In this document: in pieces, positions 24,025-63,031 of the stretch | How the letters are laid out: each line of letters begins with the position of its first letter | How positions within the stretch are numbered: the first letter of the stretch is position 1 | Assembly: GCA_964247055.1 (NCBI GenBank) | Contig: OZ176051.1 | Location: forward strand, 5,208,001 to 5,272,000 | DNA: 64,000 nt | Reading direction: 5' to 3' | From: Paragordius varius | Lineage: Eukaryota; Animalia; Nematomorpha | Position numbers and translations under genes: made by a program | The notes under the pieces: generated by a model | Told to the model about the DNA's origin: nothing | The model's input: the letters and a program-made list of their open reading frames with translations, nothing else | Databases searched by the model: none

Positions 24025-27000
24025 AAACGTTTAAAACATTCTGTGGCCGCAGAGGAGGAAACTGCTTACGTCAATTGGATCAATAAATTGCTAAAAGATG
24101 ATGCCGACCTCAAAACTTTACTCCCAATGGAGGTTGGCAAATTTTTTCCAAAACTTAAGGATGGAATCATACTTTGCAAATTGGTTAATAGTGTTCAACC
24201 CAACACGATTGATGAAAGAACGCTGAATAAACGTGATGATGGCAAGGAACTAAACATTTTTAAGAAAACGGAAAATTTAAACTTAGCTGTCAATTCGGCA
24301 CGGGCTATTGGTGTCAATACAACCAACATTCATACGGAAGATATCTTAAAGGAGCGACCACATCTCATACTAAGTTTTTTGAGACAGATCATCATTTTGG
24401 GTCTCTTTGCCAAATTAGATTTAAAATCTCATCCTGGATTACAGGTTACAACATTTAATTATAAAATATGCAATTTTTAAGGTTAAATAATTTATGGATA
24501 GTGTTTGTAAAGTATAATGGCCAAAAGAGAGATATAAGATAGTTTTATGATTGTATAACAAAAATAAATTGCGATTATCATAACAGGTTTTGCTTAAGCC
24601 AAACGAAGAGCTTTCCGATTTCATTAAACTACCACCCGAAAAGATTTTACTTAGATGGGTCAATTATCAACTCGGGCTGGCGAAGTTTAAAAGGAAAATG
24701 AAAAATTTTACCAAAGATGTAAAAGATAGTGAAATTTTTTGTCAACTAATTAAACGTATTGCCCCACATGATATACCAATCGATATCGATACAGTTATCA
24801 AGGAGCAAAATATGGTCAAACGGGCTGACCTTATGTTGGAACAAGCGGATAAGTTAGGGTGTCGTGATTTCATAACTAGTCGGGATGTGAGTGCAGGAAA
24901 TTACAAACTTTGCCTAGCCTTTGTGGCCAATTTGTTTAATAATCATCCAGCTTTGCCGGTTGATATCTTAGAGCCACCCGAAGAAAAGATTGAAGAAACA
25001 CGGGAGGAAAAAACTTTAAGGAATTGGGTAAATTCAATGGGTGTACAACCACGTATTAAATATTTGTATCCCGATGTGCAAGATGGTATAGTTTTGTGCC
25101 AATTGCTGGATAAAATGCAACCCAAAAGTGTCGATTGGACCAAAATCAAGAAGACGTTTAAAAAGGGGTCAGCTGCAATAGAAAAGCGCGACAATTGTAC
25201 ACAAGTTGTTGAAGTGGCAAAAAATATGGGCGTATCTCTGGTATAAATATCAATATTTTTTTGAGGCGTAGGGCTGATGCACAAGGCGTCATAGTTGAAG
25301 GGGCGCCGGATTTTAAAAAATAATTTTATATAAAAAAATAAGGTATTTAAAAGTTATTATTTTAAATTACATAAAAAATCACTATTGTTATGAGTGGTCA
25401 TGACTACGGTTTGAATTGAATTATTTTTAATGCAAGAGGTCGCATGGGGGGGGGGGGGGGGGGCGTTATCACGGATTCATGCACCGTGCGTCAGAAATGC
25501 GTGCTGCGCCTCAGATTTTGTATTATAATTCCTTTTAAAATAAATTTTAAATTAATTAATTTTACTTAAAATCTTAACCTAATTGCTAAAATAGGTTGGC
25601 GTGGGTGGTGCCGACATATATCAAATGAAAAAAAATCCGATTCTTTCACTATTGTACCAATTGTTGCATAAACAAACCATTAGTATACTGATGAAATTAA
25701 AACCGGACGGTAAAGTCCAAGATAAGGATATTATTCAATGGGCCAATGCTCGATTAAAAGCGGGTGATAAAAAACGAACGCTGAAAAATTTTCAGGATCC
25801 TATTTTATCGGATGGGATATTGCTACTGGATTTGATTGAATGTATTAGACCAGGGCGTGTCAGCTGGAGGTTAATGTTTTACTCAAAAAAATTAAAATGA
25901 GGGTAATTAAAAATATGCGAGAAATTTGTATACAAAACATAAATACAGTAAAAGGGTTTTTGTGAAAAACACAACGCCGTTTTACAAATGATCATGTTTC
26001 CGAATTACGATACATCATTAACTTTAATTTGGATTTAAACAAAAAAAAAACATCAATTTTAAGTTTAAACATTTGTTACAAGACAAAAAAATAAAAAATT
26101 TATGCATAAACTCCAATATGATATGCAAAAAACAGTAAAATGATCAAATAAGAAAAATGTTTCGTGATAACAAATGGGCTAAATCCCAATGTTTATAGTT
26201 TATTAAAATATATTTATTTGTATTACAGTTTGGTTAAAGGGTGCACAAGTGATGGAAGTTTAGATTCAAACATTACTGACGAAGATAGACTCAGCAATGT
26301 CGGGTACCTTATATCTCTTGCTAGGAAGTTAGGAGCCGTTATTATAGCTTTACCAGAAGATGTTTTAGAGGTAACTCTAAGCAATGTGTATAAATACCAC
26401 GATCTATTTTTAAACATCGTGATTTATATTTAATTATATTTTATATTGGTTCGATATAAAATTTATTAAAAAGGTTTTTTAAATAAAGTTACAAAAAGTT
26501 AGAGTATAATATATATCTTAAAAAGCATTGTATATATAAAATTTTATAGCTTAAATTAATAAAACGGTAGAATTAATTTTTTTTAGATTACATGTGCTTT
26601 TTATATAAATTAATTTAGTTGAAACCCAAAATGGTTATGACAATATTTGCTTCTCTTATGACGCTTGATGTCAGTGCTGAATCGGCTCCAGCTCCCAAAG
26701 ATGAAGACGCTGAGGCCGCTGCGCCTGCCGGTAATTTTGATTTTTTTACATTTTTAATTTTTTTTATATTTAACCTGCAAATCATGAACTATTTAAGTTT
26801 AATAATATTAATTTTTATTTTAATCATTGAAATTTTACAAATTAACACTTTAACATTCGCCTCTTTGCATAATGGTAATAATATATCTTTGGAAAATCAA
26901 ATAATTTCTTCATATGTGAACTACGGCCAACTATTTGATTATCTTAACCGAAAATATTATTTTTGTAAAACTTTGTTTCATAGAACCCGCACGAAAATCA

Positions 27001-27144
27001 GGTGCTAAGAAAACACCGGTTGGAGAAAAACCAGGCACACCCCCTCCACCACCCGAATCCCCTAGGAGTGAAAGTCCAGCCGGAGAGGAGTCTGAAGAGG
27101 AAATGGAAGTTGAATTAGAGGACGAAGAAGAGGAGGAAGAATAG
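24025..27144 (+). CDS. Fim: Plastin/fimbrin (four CH domains, ABD1+ABD2) with an acidic Pro-rich C-terminal tail; 5' exon(s) not identified
   Basis: Exons 24025-24444, 24587-25240, 25595-25869, 26229-26370, 26619-26730 and 26984-27144 are GT-AG and phase-consistent (1764 nt). Plastin motifs: HS..EEETAYVNWIN, DGIILCKLVN..QPNTIDERTLN, ENLNLAVNSARAIG, EKILLRWVN, LAFVANLFN, ETREEKTLRNWVNSMG, ALPEDVLELKPKMVMTIFASLM. Confidence 0.95.
25261..25514. mobile_element. hAT-type MITE in a plastin intron; short relative of the 30768-33259 element
   Basis: Termini ttgaggcgtagg / gctgcgcctcag. The left half matches 30768-30925 and the right half matches 33160-33259. Contains a long G run. No clear TSD. Confidence 0.65.
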
Positions 27145-28391: not shown

Positions 28392-31300
28392 TTATCGTTT
28401 AGTGTGTGGTAAATTATAAATGTTGGCATGAACACCATAGTAGGGATTCCACTGCTTTCTGTATATTTCCATCAATTTATTTTGATGCATTCGGTTGCGC
28501 ATCAGGGCTGGTGTTAACAACTGTCTCACATTCGGTATCTTTTGATACACGTCAGAGTTATAAAAATACCAAGGTGGAGTTAGCTTTTCGGTGGGATTAA
28601 CCAAATTTCTGATGTGTTTACCATCAGTTTGGCCCTTATAATGGCTTCGTATCTTTTCTGCTCTTTCATCTTTCCTGTTGGTGAGACTATCCGTGTAAGA
28701 TTCGGTGTTAGCTACATTATGATTACTGTTTTCAATACTATTACTTTGTATTATATCATCATTTTTTTCATTAGTAGTTGTGGGGACCCTTCTCATTTTG
28801 TTGTCTTTGACATTTTTTCTCAGTGGCACCTTTACCCATTCATCATTATTCTTGACCCTAGACCTAATTATTAATTTTGGATTCTGTTCATAGCCATTCC
28901 CACCATATCCGTACCCATTAAATCCCCCTGTAACTGTTCCAGCCAGCTCAATAGTTTGTGGCATGACACTTTGATCATAAGCTATTTGTGTGTGAACTGG
29001 AACAACGTAGTTATTTCCCCCAAAAGCTGATATATCAAAATCTGTGTCAGATCCACTATCATGATTATGGTCTGAGGAGGAAGTGTAAGGAGATTCATCA
29101 CTATTTCCAAATTTCTTTTGTTCATAGTAATGATGAGACGTTTTCCCATCGCTAGGATCACTGTCTTTTTTGCTAAAGGTGTAACCTGTCCAACAATATA
29201 ATTAATGTTTTTAAATACATCAAAATTTTAAACAACCCTTTTTTAAACGGTTAGATGTGTTGACTCGTAAAGAATCAGGTGTAATTATAATTTGTCCTAC
29301 CTAAAAGTTTTGGCTAATTGAATTATTTTAAATGCAACAATAGATAAAATGTGACATTTTATTTCAAAAGCTAAAACACTGCCCCTGATACTTGAGAATA
29401 TTTTCCTTTAAACGGAAATCATAATCTATACATAGTATTTTATTTATTATGGTCAAAATAAAACTAAACCTAGTGATAATTATGCAGACAATTTTATTGA
29501 TCATAAAATATCTCAAATATTGTTGGTTAGTTTTTGGCTCTAAGTAAATAATTATACCTTGAATATTTCCATCCGGACCTAATTTAACTTTGTATTCACT
29601 GTCTGGAGTTTTGTAAACCCTTTGAGATGGTGATTGTTGAACATAATTATTGGATTGACTTCCATCAGCTTCATCAAATCTAAAAATTTGGTAAAAGTAA
29701 TAAATATTTAAAAAAAAATGCGCTATATATTGTAAGAAACAATTTTTATAAAATTAAATTCATTCATTAAAATACCCTGATTGTGGTTATTTATACTGTG
29801 TTTAAACTCAAATATTAATTTTAATAAAACTAAGTTAAATTTTTAATTTCTAATCTGGTTTATCATGTGTAAAAAACAATTAATGTAGTAATTGAATATT
29901 GCTGATACTTATTAAAAATCTATTACCTTTTAAGGAGCGATTTATTATGTGAATATCTCAATAAGTATATATGATATTAAGGTGAATTTAAAATACTTTA
30001 TTTAGTCTTTTAGGCGCATTATTAAAAATTTGTTAATATAAAAAGCTTTCAGGCCACATTGTAGCAGCAAAAACTTGATATATTTTGATTTTAATATCAG
30101 CTCTTTGTTTCAATCGTGATTTAGGGCTGTCCCAATTTTAGACTTAGGAAGTCACAAAACTGTAAAAAATATAAACTTTATATCTAATAAATGAGAATGT
30201 TTGATAATTATATTTTAACTAAAATAATTTCAAAACAGTAGTTTATATAAAGAATTTAGCTCTCGGATATTAATCTACCTTAAAAAGTAAACCAGGACAA
30301 AAAAATGAAAAGGTTAAGTGTTAAATACACCATTTACAATTCAAATTCACCCTCGAACAATTCGAATTCACCCTTAAACAATTCAATTTAACCCCAAAAA
30401 ATTAATGGTTTTCGGGATAATATAACTCATCATTAATTGAAATATATCTCTATGGCATTGTTTATTATTTTTTGAGTATTATAATTTTGGAGAATATTTC
30501 ATTTTTTTGAAATAAAAAAAAATAGGTAATTTTTAATCTTAAAAAACACAATGCATTATAGGGTCTTTGAAGGTGAACATGAATTTGGCTATATCAACTT
30601 ATATTATTAATTTGAGCTCTTTAAAGTGATGTTTGCAAAATATAAGTGAAAAATTAGTTATTTTGCATTGGTATATGAATATTTGCTAAGGCAAGATTGG
30701 GCATATGATAGAAATAATTTTTATATAAAGTGATTAACCAACATTTGTTCAATTTAGTGACTCATTACAGTGGCGTAGCTAGAGGGGGAAAAAGGAGGAT
30801 TGATGCAGGCGCCATAGTTGAAGGGACGCCGGATTTTAAATTTTAATATTTTAAAAAATAGGCATTTAAAAGTTATTATTTTAAACATACATAAAAAATC
30901 ACCCATTTTTGAGTGGCCTAACCTTCGATCTTAACCATAAAAAATATCCTTTAGAATTAATATTTAAGTGTAACCAACTGTTAAATATCCTTATTTATTA
31001 TATCTCGCAACTTCTTCAAGTGCCTACCTTTTATAACCTCAGCCTGTTTATATGGCTACCTTCAAATCTTTGCTTTAAATCACCATGGTTTCAGATATAA
31101 GGATAAGATCATTATTATTGTGCTATTTTTCTTTCAAAATATAATATCGCACAATGCCACCTTTTGTGTTAAAATTCTCTAAATTTAACACTTCGATTCA
31201 AATTGGGGTATCTAAATACCCCAGACTAAATTTGAGTTAGGATTTTTAAAAAACTACTGAAGGAAACGGTCCAAATTTAAATTTATGCTTCTATCCTAAT

Positions 31301-34300
31301 AAAAATTATATAAATATGCCAAAATATCTAAATAAAATTTTGTTTAGAAAAAAAAGCTCCATGTCAAACCACTTGGCCGCCATTTTATTTTACAAAATTT
31401 TCGCAAAATATCGTCTTCATTTAATTTTAAGGGTAAAACTAAAGCTAATTTTATATATAAATTACATCTAACATTGATATAAATAGAAAAGGCGGTTTAT
31501 TTTGTATTATTTTTCAATTTTACCATTGCACGCATGTCACATTGACTAAATTTTTTACCTATCGGTTTTAGCTTAAAATATGTAATATCAAGTATTTTTA
31601 AATAAAATTTTTTATTTATTTGGGTTTATTAATGTTATACAAGTGCAAGATTTTGCCATAGTTTCGATTCATTCCATATTTTTTAAAGAATTTAATTATA
31701 AAAAGGCCTGGGGTATTTAACTACCCCAATTTGAATCGAAAGACTAAAATGAATGTGTTGTATCCAAGTGTTAAAATGATATTATAAGAAAGAGCAAATT
31801 CCAAAAAATCATGTTTATTTTTTTCCCTAATTTAGGGCATGGTACTATGTACATACATTATACCGTGCTTTTTTTTCTTTTTTCTTTTTTTGTTACCCTT
31901 AACCATTTTTTTGCTGCTCAATTGCAGGTTTACTCTTTTCTTCTTGAATTTAATATATTTCTTATTTCATTATTCCATTATTCATTAAAGATGTATCAAA
32001 TATGATTATATTTTTTAATATATTTATTTTCAAGTATTTTTAAAAAACAATGAACCACACAGCTTATTTAACCTATGGCCATCAAATATATTTTATAAAT
32101 CAATATTGATAAGTGAATTAGAGTTGCATTATTATATTATTTTCCGATTATAACGAATTTGTTCTGTTGCCTCAGAAAAAGAAATAAGATTTTTGATCAA
32201 AATATAGTGCCGTGGAACTAAAATTTTATAAAAAATGGGACAGGAACCAAATCAGAAAAAACTGACTTGAAACCGGACCCTAAAACTGCTTCGTTTAAAA
32301 TCCTGTTTTTTAATATATTAAAGCTTTATTTTTAAGTTTTAATCGTTCGTCCTGTTATAAAATCTCGAAGGGTGGAATAGGATAATTGTCAAAATAAAAA
32401 ATAATCATTTTAATTAAATTTGTTTTATCAGGAATGCATAAACATGGCGGTTCTCAAAATAAAAAGAAAGATAATTATACCGCACAAAAATTAAGAGAAA
32501 AGTTCCAATCATATTTACAAAATGCTAATAATCATAAAACCAATTCTATTTTACTGACCAACAACAGCGGCCCACTATTTTCAGATAATTTTATCCGACA
32601 ACAACACCTTCAAAAACACCACCTCTCCCCCACAACAGGGCAATATTTTTCGACAATAGTAATTCGACAATAACAACTCTGTCTAACAACGGCGCGACAA
32701 TAGCCATACAATACAGGACCTTAATAATATGGGGAGTTCACAAACTAAAAAATGATTTATGAAATAAAATTTTACCATCTGCCATTTATTCAAGCGATGT
32801 GGCATATTTAAAGTTTAATATTAATACCCTATAATTACAATATTTGTATCTAGGGATGGAGTTTTCATGAAAATTTAAATTTAACTTTTGTGACTTGATA
32901 TTTTCAATACTTGAAAGCCACTCTTTTTCGAAGCAGGCCATTTTTCAAAAAATTTTTTAGACGGGCGCATTCGAATACAGTTTGAATACGGCACTACATT
33001 TATATTAAACTAAGTCGAAATTGCGCAGAAACTAATATATTTTTTAATTACTGATACATTTGCTCAAGCCGTCGCTTCAAAGGAATGGGGTCGAATAAGC
33101 ATGTTTTTTTCACGTGATTCTTTTCATGACGAGCTCTATTTTGTCCCACTACTGTTTGAATTTGATTATTTTTATAAAATGCAACGGGTTGCATGGAGAG
33201 GGAGGGGACGCCATCACGGATTCATGCACCGGGTGCCAGAAATGCAAGCTACGCCTCTGACTCAATATGATTCGGGCCTAAAATAGCATGTTAAAAGGCT
33301 ATGATTATTATGTCGTCCAATAATTACAAACCTCCATTTCAAACAACATACTTTGTGAAAAGAAGCGATTCGTTCAGACCTCAGGTAAAATGTATACAGG
33401 TAATTTATAATTTTTAAAGTCCTTTTATAACAGTATAAATGCTCTGTCAAAATCTTAAAAATTATAATTGGGGAGAGTTAAAGTTATTTTTAAATTTATA
33501 CTACTTTAGCCTATATACACTTTTTACACTATCCGTACATCCTAGCATATATTTTCCATTATGGGGTCGTGGTAGGATAATAATCATAAGAAATGTAAAA
33601 TTTTAACTTTTCGAAAAAATCAAAAACATTAAGATCGAAAATCGAACTCATTTACACCAGATATTTAATTTTCTTACCCTTGATCCACCGAATCTGGTCC
33701 AAAGCTTCCATAGGTCGGTTCCGCCGAATGATAATGATGCCCGGGTCCATCATGTGTATCGTGATCATCGTTATGGGCTACACTTCCCTCATCCATATCC
33801 GATCCGTATGATGAGTCATCGATGGCAGATTGGGGTGCAATGGCACCTCCCTGAGCTCCGGATCCTAAACTGTAGGGAGGCCTCCCATTCGTGAAGTAAT
33901 AACCTGAAGGTATGTTAGATTGATAATGTGGTGTTTGCTGATGTTGACTAAAGGTATTTTGTGTGTTTCGGTTGTTTACACCGTAAGTTGTTGGATTTGG
34001 ATAGGGATAAACGGTACCGCTAACATAATTACCACTACCTGTTAAGGGGACAGAAGATTGCATATTTTGAGGCGCATGATAAGGATGGTTGTACCATATA
34101 GGCTGTTCCGGGGCATTATACTGAAAACTGGTGATTATGGATGAGGCTGCTGCTTGTTCGGGACCAGCGATTCCCTCAGGAATCGAGGATATACCCGGCA
34201 TAGCGCTAGAGCCAAACCCACTTAAAGGCGGAGATCCTACATCTAAAAACTCTTCTGTTCTTTCTTCCCTGGGTGGTGAGGCCGAATCTACGGGATCCGT

Positions 34301-37300
34301 AAATACTGGAGACATAAGGATATCCGTTGGTACAACTTCCCGACCAAATCTTAATGAGGAGGGATACAGACCTGAAATATCATCTACGGCTGAAACATCT
34401 GAATATTCCTCGCCACTAGGGGAAGAAGAATATGGGGATCCCGATGTTTCATAACCTGAAAATACACATAATAAAAATTTTGTTTAGTGTTTAAAAGTTA
34501 TTTGATTAAATGATATACATAACTTAACTTAACCCACTTTGACATGGCTACTTATCTGCAACAACATTCATTTATTAGACATATTGATTAGATCGCTTAT
34601 TAATGTCATTTGTTTAAAAATAAATTAATATTTTACCTTCTGGTCCGGATGAGGGATATGGGAATCCACCTTCGCTACCTGTCTCAGAGCCCGAAGTGTC
34701 ATACCCACCATAAGGTCCTGATTGCTCCGTAGGCCCGGCGGAAGGGTAGGGTGAAGCATATGGAGAGGGAGCGGGGGGTGGTGGACCCGATTCAAATCCG
34801 GGCGCTCTTTGACTCGTGTACATTGAGGGGAGCAAAGAACCCGAACCAATCCTCACAGAACCTGGCTGGGGCCTAATTTCTTCCCGTGGAGGCGGACCAT
34901 AATACACTGTCTGAGGAGGAAAAGAAGGTGCATCTACTCTAGTGGCTAAATTTAAACAAATTTGTTTCACACCATAAGTATCAAAAATGTATTATTTAAC
35001 AGAGCTTGAAACCGGAGCCACCTATAACTATAGTTGCTTAAAATCAAGCTACAGGTTTGGTTTTACTTCCACTATTTCAAGACCCACCCTTGTATGGGCT
35101 CCAGTTTTTTGTGAAGTGTAGTTGAAATTTTTTTATAAAAAACAACCAAAACCGGTACCTTGCCTGAAACCACACCGGTTCTCTTTTATTCTGGTTCTTA
35201 GCTTAGTTTTAAATTATTTAATATGTTAGAAATTATACCAGATCCAACTGTTTCTCTTCCATAACCTTGTCGATAACGCTCCGAATCGTCTAGTTCTGAA
35301 GCTTCTCCCTCCACTCTATTAGATGGGCCTACAACAAAATAATACTCATTTAAACAATTTTAAACGGTGCTCTTTACCGATGATTATAAATGATAAATCA
35401 TGCAGACATATATGATTTTATCTAGCACAAAACGAAATTGCATTTAAACCTAAAGGTGTTTATTCATATTTTTAAATAAAATATAAGTATTGAATATATA
35501 TCTAATATCAATTAGTCTATTACCAATTAAAATTAAATATCACGGCACCTTAATAATGAACAACTACTATTAAATTAATGAATTTTTGATAAAAAATTTA
35601 GCTTTATTTGTGTTACACTCCAAATTATTAAAATTTGTTACCATCAGGTCTAGAATTAGATCCTCTAGGACCCATAAAACCGCGATACGCTGGGCGAGAT
35701 ATACCCGATGAATCTTCCAAATCCTGGGTGTCGGAAGGACCTTCCTCGCTATCTGTTTATAAGAAACACACCATTATTTGACACATATGTATAACATTTA
35801 ACATTTATTTGAGTTTATGCAATATTTTCTATGAACCACGGTTAGTTGTAATAAACAGTTTGAAGGCTTATGAAGCAATCATTTTTAAAGAATTATTATT
35901 ATCACATGTGTTGTTGTTCATTTGAACTTCAGGAGTGTCTTTTAACATTTCGAATTAATCCTTGAACAAATTAAGAACGTCCTTGAACATATTCCAAGTT
36001 AATCCTTGAACTTTTCAATTTGATCCTTTAACACTTCAAGTTGGTCCTGTTGACAATTTAAGTTGGTTCTTCAACATTATTTCTATTTCAGAACTTTTAT
36101 CAACAATCTATGTAGACATATCTTACCATCTTTTAACTAATATCATTATTTAACCTAAAAACAACGTTTATAATTCAAAAACAGTGGTTTTATTCATTTT
36201 AAAATTTACAATAATAAGCTAAATTAAAAAAGTATTAGTTTTCTGTTAGTTGAAATTTTCCGTTAAACCATAAATAAGTTTATAATTTTATTGAATTGCA
36301 TAAAATTAAGTTTGAAACGAAAAAGTTGTTTTTGATTGAAGAATGTTTTTAATAAAAATATATATAATGAATAGGTTAAATATTACAGTATGAGTAGTAT
36401 ATGCTAGAAAGTTATTAATTATTGCCAAATAGCATATGCAGCAAAGAGCTTCATTATTGGCTAATAATAGCAAAAATTAAAAATAATAACTATAAGCCAA
36501 TAATACTGCCCTTTGTTGTATATATTTGGCAATAATAATTACTTTCTAGCAATGTATACTTCATATAATAAAATAGAAAAATACATGTAAAAATTTTGGT
36601 TATCTGCTAACTTAAACAGTTTAAGAACCAACGTGAAGTGTTAAAGGACCAATCAACAAATTAATAAGGGCACTCTGAAGTGCAAATGGTATATTGAATC
36701 AAACTAAATGAAGTAAATCGCTCAAATCTTATTTAATAGCGTCACTAATATATTAATAAAAAATAATGCAAATTTGTTAAATTTCAATTCCAGAATTATT
36801 ACATGAAATATTGTATTATACCAATTTTTCCTACAAATAACATAGGCTCAAAATGTATTGACTCATTATTTTTATAAAGCTGCAGAATCACAATCCTAAA
36901 AGTCCTAATAACGTATTTACTCTTACGCCCGCAAGGACATAAAACCTGTTCAAAAGTGATCAAATTTTTTCTTTGTGTGTATCAAATTTAATGTTAACCA
37001 TGTTCTAAATGTTCTCGTTCCTCCTCACTAGCTGCATCATTAGCTGACTCTTCCGATTCTGAGTCATGATGATGATCATGTGACTCATCAAGCTTTTCTG
37101 GTTTTGTATCTGATTCTCCACTTTCCCCTCCAATCGAATCAGCTGATTCTGATTCACTCGTTTCTTCGGGTGAGGTTTCGCTTTCTGCCTCTTCTGATGT
37201 TTCGGGTATATCGGCTTCACCTTCTTGTCCTTCTAAATAACATAAATATAAATTATTATTTGACGCAATTAATGCGATTTTGTTGTCCTAAATATTTGGC

Positions 37301-40300
37301 TAGGTCATACGGTTATAGGGAAACTGAATTTTTTCTTAATATTATAATCGTGCCTATCTTATCGATTACAATGGACTTATACTTACACCTTTGTCTCTTT
37401 GATAAAAATCTTACAAATATTTTAAATTTAATTTTAACGCATGTCCCTTGTTGACCCCTACTTTTTTAAACACATCACAGCCAGTCTATCCACTTCCTAC
37501 TGCCTACTTTTCGGCACATGTTTTTTTCAAACATTATTAAGGAGTTTTTTAAAAAATGTAATATTTTGTTTGAACAAAATAAATACCATCCTCCGTTTGA
37601 GCGGCGTTGACGGGAACGCTTCTACGTTTTCTAAAATGTGAACGTAGGGCTTCTTGTTCTTCTGGTGTCAAATCACCACCAAAAACTATTTTGGGCTGAG
37701 CTTTGCCACTCTTTTTGCTGCCACTAAAATTGGGATGTATATTTGATGAGCGATACTTTGACATCAAATCAATGGTAAAATGTAAAAACTTTTTAATTCG
37801 ATTTTAGTAGTTAGATTAATAACCTGTATTGATTTATGTAACGTTTGTACTCTTGTTCTGATAATTGTTCGGTAACGTAACCATCATCACCAGACCCCCC
37901 GCTAATATATGACATGGAGTCGTCTTCGGGAACTTTTGATTCAGTAGGTGATGAACCTTCATTATTATTAACGATTTGTCGCACGATTTCATATTCTTCC
38001 CCATTGTAGGAAATTGTGTCACCCATTTTTTTACCTTTCAATAACGTACCGAGTTCACCTTTATCCTTTGAGCTTACCATAATATTTTGAGGTTTTGTTT
38101 CTTTGGCTGACAAGCGAGATGTAGTGTCTCCGGATTGCGTAAGAGTTTTGGAGGGGGTAACAACTGTTGTTTTCGCAGGGTTTACATACAAATCTTTTGT
38201 TTTGGGGGCATATGTATAGTGTTTAAGCTTTAGTCCTGAGGTTAGTGACGTTTCTAGATTCATGCTAGTATCTTGCCCATCATTCTTTTTTGTAGATTCA
38301 TTTCCGCTGTGCTTTTTGCCAAATAAATTGAGTTTAGGTCTTCGGAAAATTTTTATTTTACGCCGAACATCCATTTTTTGGTCAACTTTTGAATCCGTTA
38401 ATTTGGTTAAATCTGTGGCAGCGTTTTGGGCTTTAAGTGCTTCATTTAAAATTTGGTTAAGAAGTTGTTCATTAACATCTTGTGCTTTATTAGCAGGTTG
38501 TTTTACCATTTTATTTTGGGTATTTGTTACTAAGCCCGCTTGATTTAAAGCAAGAGTTTGAGTACCATCATGATTCACAAGTTTTTCCATATTGCCATAC
38601 CCTTCGATTGGCTTGCCAGTCTCAGCGTCAATATAACGCACTTTCTGTTTTTTCTTTCGACCTTTCCTCCTTTTCTTATCTTTCTTGCGCTTCTTTTTGC
38701 TGGCTTCAGTAGTCATTTCAGCACCCATATCCTCTGTTTCATCCTACATTAATTTAGTAGTTATAGAAAATGGATCAACTTTTATAAGTAAAATATTAAT
38801 TATAAAAAATATATATTATATATATTACATCATCGGGATCCCCCATGTTTTCAGATACATCCGAGCCTGATATTTGAGCGTTCGGGAGAGTTTGAACACC
38901 TGCACTCACTGTATTTGAACTTGTTTCACCTTGGCTTATAATCTGATTTAGGCTTTCGGGTCCTATAACCTCATCTAAAATTACCAAATACATGATAGTC
39001 TTTTTATTAACTTGAATGCGTATGTTAAATACCATAAAGTCACTTGTGTGATCAGGAATATATGATAGAATTTTTTTGAAAATCAATATGTTAAAATTTT
39101 AGGTGAATACAAACATCATACCCTATCATAGTATTTATTATTGGTTAAAACAATATTGTACCTGGACTTAAATACATTGGTTTTGTAAACTTAAATTGAG
39201 TTTGAGTGAGTTGCTGTGGTTGTGGTTGTGATAGTTGATGGAAACTAGGATTTCCCATGCCTGATTGTTGTTGGTTAAATGGTTGCTGAATATAATTGCT
39301 TTGTTGTGGAACATTATAATTAGCTGTCGGCACCAATCTTATGGGGTATGATGGTTGAAATCTATATGTCCCAACTGGGTTCATAGGATTCACAAAATTG
39401 TTATTGTTCAGAACATTGGCTCTAACCAAAGAGCCATTGGCGCTGTTTGGCACGCCAGTTAAATAAACTGCTGGCGGTAAATATGAAGGATAGTATGGTG
39501 TCCTTCGATTAAAGTATGGATGAACATGACCAAGCGGATGAAAAGCATTCGGTCTTCTAAGATTAGGCTGCATATTCGTCATCAGTCTTTGTTGTCTTAT
39601 TTGATGTGCTATATGTTGATTATGTGACCCATTTCTATTCAATAGCGGGACAAAAGCCGGGGCGGGGTAGTAAACGCCCAAAGGTAATCGAGCCATTGGA
39701 TACCCCTGAGGTACAGGACGAAATTGAAATCCAATATTGTTTGGCGCGCCTCGCATATAATTATACTGAGGAGGATTGTTACCTAATATTCTATAAGCGA
39801 TATTTCTGTAAAAAACAGTTTAAACGTCCTATTAAAGATTATTTACATCATGTGATCTGATATGGTGGATCCATTAGCTTATTTAATTATCTATATTTTT
39901 ACTTTTTAGATAAATTGAATACATATAATTGTGATATTGAATTGAGTCTCACGGGAATGCTACGGCCGTGCTATGCTCTAACAAATAGTCAAAGTTAAGT
40001 ATAAAACACCTCTAAATAATATAAATAATTTCAAATAAAAAATTATTTCAATATATTTGAAAAATCATGACTCTCATTTAAATCTTGTGAAAATTTTTCA
40101 TTATATATTCGGTTAACCTTATTTTTAGGTGATACGAATTAGTTGGTAAAAGTTGGGTGTGGTTTTATATTACTCGAAAACCCTGCTCTCGTTCGAAATA
40201 TAGAAAAGGGACCTATTCAATTAATGGTCTTTGCATAACAATGAAATGTTAACAAACCTATTGCCGTTTTGTGGATTAATAGGCATAGTGCGTTGTAGCC

Positions 40301-41868
40301 CATTGTTAGCCATACGATATAGATGTAAAGGATGTTGAGGACCATACATGGAATTAGTTAGGGGTGCTTGTCTCACAAAAGTTGGATATCGATTTGAAAT
40401 GCCCCCATTATTAGTTAATTGAACAGGTGTTTGACTATTAAAAGTTTGTTGTGCATTTTGTGGAATGAAATTTCCTGGATTGTGTTGAGCCTGCTGTTGA
40501 GGCTGTTGTTGCAGCTGCTGGGGATAGCTGTAATAATTTCCGGGTTCAACTATTGATAAAATAGAAAATTATCAGATAATATTTTTCAAAAATTATTAAT
40601 TTCATGACCTTGATATTAAAAAGTCCAAGTTCTTTTTTAATTACATGGTAAATACTTTTGCATCAAAGTCTCATGACAGCTTTAACACTCTAGCACTGGA
40701 GAGACGCAATCCGAGTTTGACACCTTAATTATTTATCCCCAATTTAAACAATATATTTTCACGCATTTCCTGTACGCAAAAATCTTACTTTCGTCTGTGG
40801 TAGGAATAGCGATTCTCCGTTTGAAAGTACGCTTCCCATCTTTATCCTCTGGGACCATGACTACTTTGCGTTCAGGTGATTCGTCTGGAACTACCATAAA
40901 GCCTTCAGGAAGACCCATAGAATCTGCCATGTGTGCCATCAAAGTACTCGTATCAGCGGAATCGCCAACAATCCCAACTCCTTCAGGTCCATACATGATG
41001 TGAGGGGTCGGACCTTCAGGCATGGTTTGTTGTTGATTCGCATTAGTTCCATCCATTTCGGGACCTATTTATTATTCAGTATTTAGTCATTTAAGATTTG
41101 ACACTTGTGAGTAAATTTTACATAATGATTATGGGATCTAAGCTTTATTTATCGAACATAACTCCCTGATGTAGTTTTCATTTTACAGAGCATACAAATT
41201 ATATAAAAGGTTACTATTATCTTTTTTTACCCAATCCTAATACCTAGGCGAAAGTGGTTTACATAAAAGTCAGAATATCGAGATGCATGAGGGGAATAGT
41301 TAATTTGTTTATAGTGATGGATTTGTGATAGATATTAAGAAATACTCTATGAACCCAATTTATATGAAATTAGCACCTTTGATAGGCTTAAATATTTTGT
41401 GCTTAACTATTAAATATATTTTTTCTCTATATATATTTCAGCCCATGAAATGGGATACGCAAGGCTGTTACGTGTTTGAAATAAAAAGTTATTAGCGGTT
41501 TTCTTAATTAAGTAAATTATATTATATTCTATAGCTAATGTACTTAAAGAAAAAATATATATACTATTTTTCCCCAAATATCATAATTCATTACCATAAT
41601 AACCACCGCTGCTCTCTTGAGCTGCTAAACCACCGTGAGTATTTTCGTCAGGATCTGGGCCTGTAGGCAAAAATATTTTGCGTGATTTTCTTTTCCGTTT
41701 TTTATCTTTTTTCCTTTTATTGCCTCGGCCTCCTGAACTATTTTCCGTCGTCGTTTCATCATCGTCTCTCCCTCGACTTAAAACGGTTGTGGTTTTGTCT
41801 GCATTAATGTAACTTAGCTGAAAGCATATTATAGTAAGGAACAGACAGATCCATAAAATAGATTTCAT
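28392..41868 (-). CDS. Large secreted low-complexity protein of unknown function, ~1708 aa, 14 exons
   Basis: Exons 41868-41595, 41064-40789, 40549-40258, 39805-39162, 38974-38829, 38743-37824, 37723-37587, 37232-36999, 35752-35642, 35328-35239, 34945-34637, 34455-33678, 29679-29558 and 29185-28392 are all GT-AG. All 13 junctions are phase-compatible; total 5127 nt with one terminal stop. Signal-peptide-like start MKSILWICLFLTIICFQLSYINA. Confidence 0.8.
30768..33259. mobile_element. Non-autonomous hAT-type DNA transposon (~2.5 kb) in intron 12 of the secreted-protein gene
   Basis: TIRs CAGTGGCGTAGCT / AGCTACGCCTCTG, flanked by an 8-bp near-duplication ACTCATTA / ACTCAATA (7 of 8 identical). 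No transposase ORF. Confidence 0.8.
31189..31770. mobile_element. TTAA-flanked MITE (piggyBac-like) nested in the hAT element
   Basis: ttaa|cactt...aagtg|ttaa, with subterminal inverted arms ttcgattcaaattggggtatctaaataccccag / ctggggtatttaactaccccaatttgaatcgaa. Confidence 0.65.
36386..36565. mobile_element. Second copy of the foldback MITE at 27969, inverted and degenerate at the right end
   Basis: ta|cagtatgagtagtatatgctagaaagtta...attgccaaatagcatatgcagcaaag; the internal segment is the reverse complement of the 27969 copy. Confidence 0.7.
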
Positions 41869-44477
41869 GGTAATCGTGTTGCGAGAGTTAATCTGCTAAT
41901 AACAAAAACATATAATTGTTTAAAATGTAACTTATAACATTAAAATCCTATGGAGCTTTCCGGTGCTGTTCACGGCAGTCACCAAGATACCCTGTGCTTA
42001 GGAGTAACGTAATTAAATCAAAAAATGAAATTCCAGGACAAAACTAAAATAAAGCAAATATTTTTTTCTAGACAACCACACCTTTTACTTTTTAAAATAT
42101 AACTGATTGTTTTAGACTGAAAAGTATAAAATAGAGTTGTAAATTGGTAACACAATCCATTTTGTATTATAAAATTGTAATTGAATGATTTTTAAAGGAT
42201 AAATTAAGGTTTAAAAAGTAAAATTGCCTATTAAAAATTTTTTATTTTTATATTTTTACGTTTTGTCCGTATAATTCCAATTTTTACTATAAAACAAAAC
42301 AGGTTTATTAAGGTAAAAATTGTTAAAAAAAAATAATTGATATCTATCTATGGGACAATAATGTAAACTTATGTCAAACAGTGTTGGCATTTTGTAGTTG
42401 ATTAGGGCTTTAGTATTTAATAACAGTTGTTAAAATCCGTAATATAACAATAAAGGATAATTAAATAAAATTAAATGAAACTACTAGAAATTATAAACGA
42501 TATACGAAACCCTTCGTCAATAGTAATCGCAGACTAGTTTCGTGCTTGTTAGCACTCATCAGTACTACACAACTATTTGACTTGGGGTTTTCACATATCG
42601 ATTTCGTATATATATATATATATAATATATATATCCAACTTTGCAATTTTGGTATAAATGCAGTTGGTTATACGAATTTAAATTAAATTTAATGGAATTT
42701 ACGAAAACTAAACTGAAAATTTGACAATAAACTGAAAATTAACTCTAGGGGTGAGCCTAGATTTAGAGTATAGCTACTTAGGGATTTCATAGAGCTTTGA
42801 AACCCATAATGATTAAGCTTATAAAAAATATGCAAACAAATAGAGCTTTTTTTAGTTGTGAAATAGATCATTTCTGAACTACACGGTTAATTAAACTTTC
42901 TATCTATCAATTAATTGCCCCCAAATTAATGAAAAGAAAATTTTAATATACATTTTCGATAAAAACAACAATGAGGACAAAAATATCATACCGCAATCCC
43001 ATGAGCCATTTATTACGAATATAAGGTTTCCAATATCTTTTATGGGTTAAAAACTAGATGAAATTTCACCAGATAGTGGGGGGGGGACACTCTTTACAAT
43101 TATTGATGCAAAAACTTATAGTTCCAACAATCAAAGTGATGCAGTTAAAATAGATATTGATGAAAATTAAAATTAATTTATGGGTGGTTGGTTGGTAGGT
43201 AGATGCAATAAATTCCGCTAAGTATAAAGTTTTTATTAATACTTGCAATTAATATACGATAGAATTAAAAAATTATATTATATATAATATATATAATCCG
43301 ACTAATCAAGAATGGGAAAGTTTTCTTTTCCCTTTTTGACAACACAATAACTTGCATATAGTATATGAGAGAAGATGAGTAGTTGTTATAAGTTAACACT
43401 CTTCATATTCTATCTATCAAATTATTTAACTAGTAATTAATTGATTAATTATAATTTCATTTTTTACGAAAAAATATTTTGTGCGAAAAAAATTATTCAG
43501 GTAAATTAATTATAACCAGGATATAAATATAACGGATAAAAAGAGACATAGATAGATTGATAATACAGATTTATGATGAATCGATGTATGTCATTTTTAT
43601 CATAGCAATAAGTTTGAGTGTTATTAGATAGATATTTATGTTTCTTCCTTAATTATTTTTCTTTTTATTTAATTTCAAACAATTTCAATTTGATTCACTA
43701 TCTTTTGTGAGTGTTTGTTGTTAATGACACAAATATATATAATGAATGTATAAACATATATTGATAGATAAACTAATCCATTATTGCTTGCTTTTTCGAT
43801 CTAAATGTCATTTTGCAATAATATTCATTTACCATAGTCTGTTTGGTACCCCAAGACCAGACCAAAATCTTACAATAAGACTGACTTCAGCTTTTATATA
43901 ATGGGAAGAAACAATTGTGGAATTTGAACGATAATATCGTAGTAGGTCTCCTAATTTCAAATCTTCAAAAAAATTTAACTTAGATGCATTCAATAGTAGT
44001 AGATAAGATAAGACAAATTAAATAAAATGTTGAATACATTCATTAGTTAGCAGTTTTTTTTTGATTCATTTTTATCAAGAAACATTGGTAGGGAAAATTT
44101 TGATTTCACAAACAAACAAATTAACTGAACCACATTTTAAGCAATCATCCCGATATTTCCTATATCCAGAGTAAAATATATAATAACTGATTTGTGCTGC
44201 ATTTTGATGTGTGTCGATTGAAAAAAGTGAAATTGTGTGAAAGTGTAAGTGAATAAATATTACACATAATATATACTAATTAATTAAACGTAAATTGACA
44301 ACCTGTTTGGTTTATTATGAATAAAAGAATCCCGGATGTTTTTATTGAAATATACAGCAAAAACATTTATTACGTCGTTTTGTGATTTTTGTGAGATTAA
44401 TGAAAAATATTTCATGCAATCAATCACATACAATATAAATCAAAAATTTAAATCCTGAATTTAATTTGTCGAAACAT

Positions 44478-61726: not shown

Positions 61727-63031
61727 TTATTGTTTTCTGCTCGATGTTATTATATTAGACGTATTGCTGACCGTTCCAACTTGATTATGTCGCCAAAAAT
61801 AGAATTTAGCCCTAAGAGTTTGTATACTCATGAAACACAAAATTCCATTCACGGCATAAATAAGCCCTAAGCTATACGATGATATGAATGTTATAATGAG
61901 TGTCGGAGCTCGACCCGTAGGTAAGGGTACAACTGTAAATATGGCAAACATTATTGAACTAATAAAGTTTATGAGGAACATGAGGAAAGCATATTTGAGA
62001 ATGGTTGTTTCCCGTTTTTTGTAGCTTAGCGCTTTTTTATCAAATGTACTTGCTTGATTATTAGTTTTATTGTTTGAAGTGATATTATCCTTTACAGGAC
62101 TTTGCGGTGTATCATCGGGAGCAATTTTGACATGAAAAGCTTGTGTATTATGCATACCATTCTGACGGAGGGCAGAAACAGTTATCGTATTCTTTGCGTT
62201 CTTTTTACCAAAAGTTGTAGAAGAACGTTGTTTTTCAAGGTTTTTATTAACATCTACATCAATAACTTTAATAGGTGCGGGTGGTGTTGCAGAGGTAGAT
62301 TTAGTTGATCTGATATCTATTAATCGTTTCCTGTGATTTCTAAGGTAAGTACCTATAATGAGGTATATGCAAAGCATAGCTGTTATGTTACCTAACTCCC
62401 ACACAATATGTAATGTGAATACGGGTGTTTGAAATCGATGATAATTGACAAAGCATCCCAACAAGATACCCGTTAATTCAACACGTCCTACCTCGACATG
62501 AACTATACGAACGACAAAACAAAGAATCCAAAGACAAGCTATGAGGATGCAAAAAATGCGGGGAGTTAAAAGTTTTTTGATCCAACCCTTAACCCTTTGG
62601 GATTTTATAGGGTCACATACTATGTAGTATCGATCCAGTGCCAAAAGAAACAAGTGGAAAGAATGACTGATGAAAAATATTTCATTCAAATATCCAAACC
62701 CATAACAAAGCTTGGGATACGCTTTAAACAGATTCAAGTAAGGGGTGTTTGGGTTCGGAGATCTCCATAACACTGCTAACATAATGTTAAGAAGGTACAA
62801 CAGGCATCCTAAAAAATCGCAAATCGTCAAGCTAAGTATGAGTAAGTATTGAGAATTACAACGGAATTTACGATATTTCAGTATGACGACAATCAATACA
62901 AAATTTATGATGGAGCCTATGACATATGAAACCGTGAATATGGCCAATAATATGGGTGTTAGATGGGGTGTAGTTCGTATCAAATAAAATGGATCGGATG
63001 ATCCTTGAATTTTTTCCAACGTAGTATTCAT
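61727..63031 (-). CDS. Orphan rhodopsin-like (class A) GPCR, single exon, 434 aa
   Basis: Seven hydrophobic segments: TM1 GSIIN, TM2 LTICD, TM3 C...LALDRY, TM4 W, ECL2 Cys and TM5 Y. Long third intracellular loop and an N-terminal NTT sequon. Confidence 0.9.
   Translation of the reverse strand: MNTTLEKIQGSSDPFYLIRTTPHLTPILLAIFTVSYVIGSIINFVLIVVILKYRKFRCNSQYLLILSLTICDFLGCLLYLLNIMLAVLWRSPNPNTPYLNLFKAYPKLCYGFGYLNEIFFISHSFHLFLLALDRYYIVCDPIKSQRVKGWIKKLLTPRIFCILIACLWILCFVVRIVHVEVGRVELTGILLGCFVNYHRFQTPVFTLHIVWELGNITAMLCIYLIIGTYLRNHRKRLIDIRSTKSTSATPPAPIKVIDVDVNKNLEKQRSSTTFGKKNAKNTITVSALRQNGMHNTQAFHVKIAPDDTPQSPVKDNITSNNKTNNQASTFDKKALSYKKRETTILKYAFLMFLINFISSIMFAIFTVVPLPTGRAPTLIITFISSYSLGLIYAVNGILCFMSIQTLRAKFYFWRHNQVGTVSNTSNIITSSRKQ

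Follow-up and report, generated by a model that had tools for sequence, protein, structure and literature searches.

The window analysed here is a 64,000-nucleotide stretch of the genome of the hairworm Paragordius varius (Nematomorpha; assembly GCA_964247055.1, contig OZ176051.1, positions 5,208,001 to 5,272,000), with a GC content of about 30%. Its minus strand carries, between positions 41868 and 28392, a predicted gene for a very large secreted protein that would be free of cysteine. A first-pass annotation had described this gene as hidden among apparently unrelated open reading frames (ORFs) and made of 14 exons joined across 13 consecutive phase-matched introns. We read the stop-free stretches between 41895 and 28395 junction by junction and found that 14 minus-strand exons (numbered E1 to E14, from 41868 to 28392) indeed form a chain in which all 13 GT-AG introns agree in phase and no stop occurs. 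The acceptors are YAG in 13 of 13 introns and are preceded by T-rich tracts. The predicted product comprises 1689 amino acids (aa) with short donors and 1708 aa with the longer donors of E8 and E10, which extend these exons to 36999 and 35239, keep the phase and are as valid as the shorter ones. In the 1708-aa form, 1685 aa remain after the signal peptide, which reproduces the length of about 1685 aa given in the first-pass annotation.

The introns succeed each other in phases 1, 1, 2, 1, 0, 2, 1, 1, 1, 1, 1, 2 and 1, so that phase 1 is found in nine of them and phase 0 in only one, and five exons (E2 and E8 to E11) are symmetric, of the 1-1 type. Phase-1 introns delimit the blocks E2, E3-4, E5-7, E8, E9, E10, E11, E12-13 and E14. 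Exon sizes range from 63 to 920 nt, and four large exons (644-920 nt) carry about 62% of the codons. E1 holds the first basic cluster as well as the signal peptide, and their linkage is therefore independent of splicing. The coordinates and main traits of all exons are collected in Table 1.

Table 1. Predicted features of the minus-strand gene, listed in the direction of transcription
Feature	Position	Strand	Description	Remarks
Start codon and signal peptide	41800..41868	-	23 codons	Predicted cut after ...SYINA; in-frame stop 9 codons upstream
E1	41595..41868	-	Signal peptide, acidic stretch, first basic cluster NKRKKDKKRKRKSRK; phase 1 end
E2	40789..41064	-	Acidic Gly/Pro/Met-rich block, net -8; symmetric 1-1
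E3	40258..40549	-	Q/N/P-rich block, Q+N 33%, one acidic residue
E4	39162..39805	-	P/N/Q/Y-rich, 214 aa, zero acidic residues, net +16	Within 224-codon open frame
E5	38829..38974	-	Small acidic S/G-rich exon; required to pass from phase 1 to phase 0	GC 0.44 vs 0.24 and 0.13 in flanking introns
E6	37824..38743	-	Second basic cluster KKKRKKDKKRRKGRKKKQK, Lys/Thr-rich region, acidic end	Within 310-codon open frame
E7	37587..37723	-	Small basic exon; RKRR then S, only strict R-x-[KR]-R site
E8	37029..37232	-	Strongly acidic S/E/D/H block; HDHHHD, four S-x-E	Donor 36999 would add 10 aa
E9	35642..35752	-	Small acidic exon; symmetric 1-1	GC 0.50
E10	35266..35328	-	Small acidic exon; symmetric 1-1	Donor 35239 would add 9 aa
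E11	34637..34945	-	P/S/G/Y-rich block; symmetric 1-1	GC 0.56
E12	33678..34455	-	S/P/G/Y-rich acidic block, net -24, His/Asp cluster; donor overlaps in-frame TAA	Within 269-codon open frame
Intron 12	29680..33677	-	3998 nt, enlarged by dispersed repeats
E13	29558..29679	-	Small internal exon; strong acceptor TTTTTAG	No in-frame ATG upstream
E14	28392..29185	-	Acidic His/Asp/Ser start, GY-rich stretch, basic Y/R/N-rich C-terminus, stop TAA 28394-28392	Within 269-codon open frame, first ATG 79 codons in

Two further observations concern the non-coding parts of the locus. A good acceptor, tttgttattag/CAG (the slash marks the splice point), precedes the start codon by 27 nt, closely following the in-frame stop (41869-41897, minus strand), and could mark an intron of the 5' untranslated region or a trans-splice site. 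Introns 8 and 12 contain 21-bp tandem repeats, at 35937-36076 (6.5 copies) and 30336-30403 (3.3 copies) respectively.

The coding character of the exons is apparent from several measures. Four open frames of 224 to 310 codons, which contain E4, E6, E12 and E14, contrast with a longest frame of 141 codons in 50 shuffles of the 14-kb region. The GC content is 0.34-0.56 in the exons and 0.13-0.33 in the introns. Relative synonymous codon usage (RSCU), when compared with that of five independent ORFs of the window, gives a correlation of 0.78 in the frame of the model, against values between -0.18 and 0.60 for the remaining five frames. Pooled, the ten small exons correlate at 0.67 with the independent ORFs and at 0.77 with the four large exons. 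No RNA gene was detected when the locus was scanned for Rfam families and tRNAs. Judged on these coding statistics, the minus strand between 28392 and 41868 holds a real coding gene and more than a chance assembly of frames, its splicing being predicted. Across the 44 contigs of the genome assembly, which total 110.5 Mb, searches with E6, E12 and E14 detected no paralogue, and the locus is single-copy.

The N-terminus of the product has the features of a cleavable signal peptide, as had been proposed: its second residue is Lys, its core of 16 residues bears no charge, and positions -3 and -1 are occupied by Ile and Ala. Averaged over 19 aa, the Kyte-Doolittle hydropathy exceeds 1.6 at residues 3-21 only (2.12, the maximum elsewhere being 1.04). 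The same scan detected no C-terminal hydrophobic tail or anchor and no other membrane segment in the model. The protein thus combines an N-terminal signal peptide with the lack of any further membrane segment, as in classical secretion, and we infer that it would enter the secretory pathway.

Only two cysteines are encoded, both inside the signal peptide. Beyond it, none of the 1654 codons specifies cysteine, while about 39 would be expected from the base composition and the two shifted frames hold 29 and 50. Counted over whole codons, the protein is composed of 9.8% S, 8.8% P, 8.3% G, 7.1% N, 6.6% T, 6.3% Q, 5.2% Y and 2.5% H, with 87 tyrosines in all. Charges are unevenly distributed: from E1 to E14 the net charges are +6, -8, +3, +16, -8, +13, +3, -23, -3, -3, -4, -24, -2 and +5, giving a net basic N-terminal half, an acidic following third and a basic tail. 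The extremes are E3 and E4, which jointly contain a single acidic residue in 310 aa, and E8, in which 25 of 67 residues are acidic. These values agree with the absence of cysteine, the segregated blocks of opposite charge and the abundance of Tyr, His and Ser that the first-pass annotation had noticed. Its description of E3-E4 as a Q/N/P/Y-rich, prion-like region is only partly borne out: the Q/N-rich composition is confirmed, but this part contains 14% proline and is therefore not a typical prion-like domain. Gene structure, coding signal and composition are direct observations.

Homology searches and structure predictions were run per exon. On a charge-hydropathy plot all 14 exons fall on the disordered side. 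AlphaFold2, used without alignment, yielded a mean predicted local distance difference test score (pLDDT) of 39 for E14 and 54 for E6 and a predicted template modelling score of about 0.2 for both (0.18 for E6), the E6 model consisting of isolated helices and a hairpin only. The chain past the signal peptide is thus predicted to be disordered almost throughout. Apart from a short run of CAG/CAA, we detected no tandem repeats in the coding sequence, and the basic clusters were the only segments found to resemble one another.

The search for relatives was negative at every level, in line with the first-pass annotation, which had recognised no family. Ten stop-free stretches covering E1-4, E6-8, E11, E12 and E14, with a few flanking non-exon codons, matched no Pfam-A family at E<=0.1, if a single match of 13 bits, at the level of chance, is left aside; E5, E9, E10 and E13 were too short for this search. 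No significant match was found among PDB sequences for E4, E6, E12 and E14 (best E-values 0.06-0.7), the ESM Atlas returned nothing usable for E14 and E6, and a word search with E6, the largest exon, was blank. An exhaustive HMMER search with E14 among 1.84 billion representatives gave a sole match (E=7.8e-5) to a repetitive bacterial surface protein, which we rejected as spurious. The window also contains, at 61727-63031 on the minus strand, an intronless 434-aa ORF resembling a seven-helix receptor (7TM). Taken as a control, this ORF was blank in the word search as well, even at E<=1e-5. The database therefore lacks close kin of this animal, and the blank obtained with E6 says little. The term orphan here means that no relatives were found outside a poorly sampled lineage, and it may simply reflect a phylum-restricted gene. 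Literature searches on the cuticle chemistry and the proteomes of hairworms yielded nothing relevant to this protein.

These properties lead us to the reading that we prefer, although we regard it as an evenly balanced call: one intact single-copy gene encoding a secreted, cysteine-free, disordered scaffold. The protein would work outside the cell, as part of a matrix, a coat or a condensate. Its N-terminal half, which is net basic and includes two Lys/Arg clusters and an acid-free P/Q/N/Y block, would attract the net-acidic C-terminal half made of S/E/D/H and G/P/S/Y blocks, both within a single chain and from one chain to another. Aromatic residues, among them the 87 tyrosines, are evenly spread along flexible spacers and would provide weak contacts, and the protein would condense at high concentration. 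Since the chain contains no cysteine, any covalent fixing would run through tyrosine, so that cross-links made by a peroxidase, and not disulfides, could then fix the protein. A secretory-pathway kinase that phosphorylated the acidic Ser-x-Glu stretches would heighten the charge contrast. By analogy with known materials, condensation, cross-linking and the kind of structure built may be envisaged in these terms. The coacervating bioadhesives, egg or cyst coats, cuticle and biomineral matrices to which the first-pass annotation had likened the protein are analogies of the same order.

We searched the genome for the enzymes that such chemistry would employ. Exons of Fam20C-family kinases were found above the Pfam cut-off at two places (G000:C3:4971744-4973222 and G000:C6:5414598-5414819), and animal haem peroxidases at a dozen or more loci. 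Tyrosinase (PF00264) had no match in the genome, but this search was also blank in every control genome, so that its absence is unproven. With haem peroxidase and Fam20-type exons present and tyrosinase unmatched, dityrosine and phosphoserine appear more plausible than 3,4-dihydroxyphenylalanine (DOPA). In a stronger version of the proposal, one chain would serve as both polycation and polyanion in a complex coacervate and would also provide the tyrosine cross-link sites. The product would be a self-condensing, cysteine-free material of a hairworm-specific structure, such as the tanning adult cuticle, the egg-string jelly or the larval cyst wall, and would found a family confined to Nematomorpha. 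We consider this version improbable.

The integrity of the gene is most exposed between E12 and E13, the weakest join of the model, which spans a 4-kb intron with two transposon insertions. The in-frame TAA at 33677-33675 overlaps the E12 donor, and the protein could stop there, with an ATTAAA 6 nt beyond. A first gene of about 1380 aa would then end at this point, while E13 and E14 would form a second gene with a short first exon inside intron 12, for instance the ATG exon of 15 codons at 30815-30769, which has a compatible phase and a GTAATG donor. The E12-E13 gap is indeed three times longer than any other intron, but it has been swollen by at least two insertions. The first, at 31183-31776, is a repeat of about 590 bp whose inverted ends measure about 33 nt and are 94% alike. 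Its scored copies number at least 40, lie on many contigs and show 88-94% identity, a first look having given 7660 candidates; the element resembles a young, abundant miniature inverted-repeat transposable element. The other, at 32502-33262, is an older repeat that spans about 760 bp and whose dispersed copies, at least 40 in number, show 66-79% identity. These two repeats account for the sole GC-rich islands of intron 12, and no exon-like candidates were found in the intron outside them. The proposed first exon at 30815-30769 is itself weak, without GC enrichment and poor as a signal peptide, and the ATTAAA is uninformative, as poly(A) signals (ATTAAA or AATAAA) occur here at their chance frequency of about 2.4 per 500 nt. 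Conversely, no donor of the gene comes closer to the consensus than GG/GTAAGA of E12, and its phase, 2, is the one that E13 requires. E13 has a strong acceptor and no in-frame ATG upstream, and the first ATG of E14 lies well inside its open frame, behind a strong acceptor, so both exons need an exon upstream. A single gene is also supported by the KRKKDKKR motif common to E1 and E6 and by the His/Asp clusters in E8, E12 and E14, the His/Asp and GY composition carrying on into E14. On these predicted signals, a split into two genes appears unlikely, and all 14 exons quite probably belong to one gene.

Besides this in-frame stop, several points weigh against a disordered extracellular scaffold. 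Low pLDDT values from single-sequence AlphaFold2 are equally expected of any orphan, no relatives were found that could attest conservation, the blank tyrosinase search weakens the DOPA idea, and the coding sequence is non-repetitive, unlike that of most structural or adhesive block proteins. Moreover, the basic clusters resemble nuclear-localisation signals or processing sites just as well. If they were processing sites, the product would be a polyprotein precursor: proprotein convertases would cut the Lys/Arg clusters and the RKRR site, freeing the acidic, the basic and the P/Q/Y-rich blocks as separate products, which would function singly or associate once secreted. Basic clusters do lie at block borders in E1, E2 (FKRR), E6 and E7, and the phase-1 introns bound the blocks in a module-like manner, but the strict convertase site occurs only once and clusters of 14-19 basic residues far exceed what a processing site needs, which makes this alternative unlikely too. 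Should the same clusters direct nuclear import, the protein might be a host-directed effector, secreted by the parasite and brought by them into host cells or their nuclei. The signal peptide, the two classic polybasic clusters and the orphan status, which is frequent among effectors, agree with such a role. A disordered protein of 1700 aa would however be unusual for an effector, the genome contains no paralogue family, and the context of host manipulation is conjecture; we hold this role to be very unlikely. Still less probable is that E1 stems from another transcript and that the remaining, real exons encode a low-complexity protein that stays inside the cell, in the nucleus. Disordered proteins of the nucleus do typically carry Q/N-rich regions and polybasic clusters, but we found no alternative start in a usable context in E2-E5, the E1 donor and the E2 acceptor agree in phase, and E1 carries the same KRKKDKKR cluster behind its signal peptide. 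In addition, complete avoidance of cysteine is more typical of extracellular disordered proteins. We retain the secreted scaffold as the preferred reading.

If this reading is true, an animal phylum that has scarcely been studied would have here one of its largest secreted disordered proteins, and nature would provide an unusually clean example of charge blocks of opposite sign on a single chain without cysteine. Phase separation outside the cell and the cross-linking of tyrosines in the matrices of ecdysozoans could then be conveniently tested on this protein. The locus also illustrates that whole genes in AT-rich animal DNA can stay hidden in bacterial-style ORF lists. The first-pass annotation went too far in presenting it as a candidate for an undescribed system: what is new is one orphan gene, and the kind of protein, secreted and disordered, is already known. 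Lineage-specific secreted disordered proteins are common in worms, so the gene, currently an unannotated orphan with an inferred role, helps annotation and will not surprise specialists.

Other features surround the gene. The window contains ORFs of animal type, such as the calponin-homology ORFs at 24043-25246. Downstream of these, a GC-rich ORF (up to 0.50) at 26935-27144 on the plus strand encodes a Pro-rich and then a poly-Glu sequence. It is convergent with the 3' end of the gene described here and probably forms the final exon of an adjacent gene.

Several known systems can be compared with the predicted protein. The secretory calcium-binding phosphoproteins (SCPP) of vertebrates and the SIBLING proteins (osteopontin, DMP1, MEPE) have a signal peptide, few or no cysteines, a disordered chain and acidic S-x-E stretches for a Fam20C-type kinase. 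The present protein shares with them the signal peptide, the absence of cysteine and four S-x-E in the 67 aa of E8, with a Fam20-type gene in the genome; this is a likeness only and implies no homology. It departs from them by its intron phases, as SCPP/SIBLING introns are all of phase 0 and only one of 13 is so here, and by its large basic and P/Q/N/Y blocks. The RGD motif, a SIBLING trait, is absent from the model protein. Mussel foot proteins, sandcastle-worm cement and fluke eggshell precursors are short, tandemly repeated proteins which bear opposite charges on separate chains and acquire DOPA through tyrosinase. Our candidate resembles them in being secreted, in its richness in Tyr, Gly, His, Lys and Ser and in the opposite charges available for coacervation, but it has no tandem repeats, both charges lie on one chain and tyrosinase had no match in the genome.

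Other classes are more distant. Unlike arthropod-type cuticle proteins and resilin, the protein shows no match to the Rebers-Riddiford domain (PF00379) and no tandem G/P/Y repeats. Mucins contain a long Pro/Thr/Ser tandem-repeat domain, whereas only a short Thr-rich stretch without tandem repeats is present here, in E6. Micro-exon genes (MEG-like) consist mostly of symmetric exons below about 100 nt, in contrast to the predominance of four large exons in our model.

The nearest described kind would be, by analogy, the secreted phase-separating disordered proteins of the pharyngeal cuticle of C. elegans, homology to them not being implied. Such proteins form much of this cuticle (PMC9629831). 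Among them, the APPG and IDPB families are cysteine-rich (PMC9629831), and this published family trait sets the hairworm protein apart from them: their low-complexity repeats are rich in cysteine, while it has neither cysteine nor repeats. It also differs from the pharyngeal-cuticle proteins by its length of about 1700 aa and by its non-repetitive sequence with oppositely charged blocks. Like them, however, it is an ecdysozoan protein in which a signal peptide is followed by biased, disordered sequence, it appears to be lineage-restricted, and for both the formation of a matrix by phase separation is proposed.

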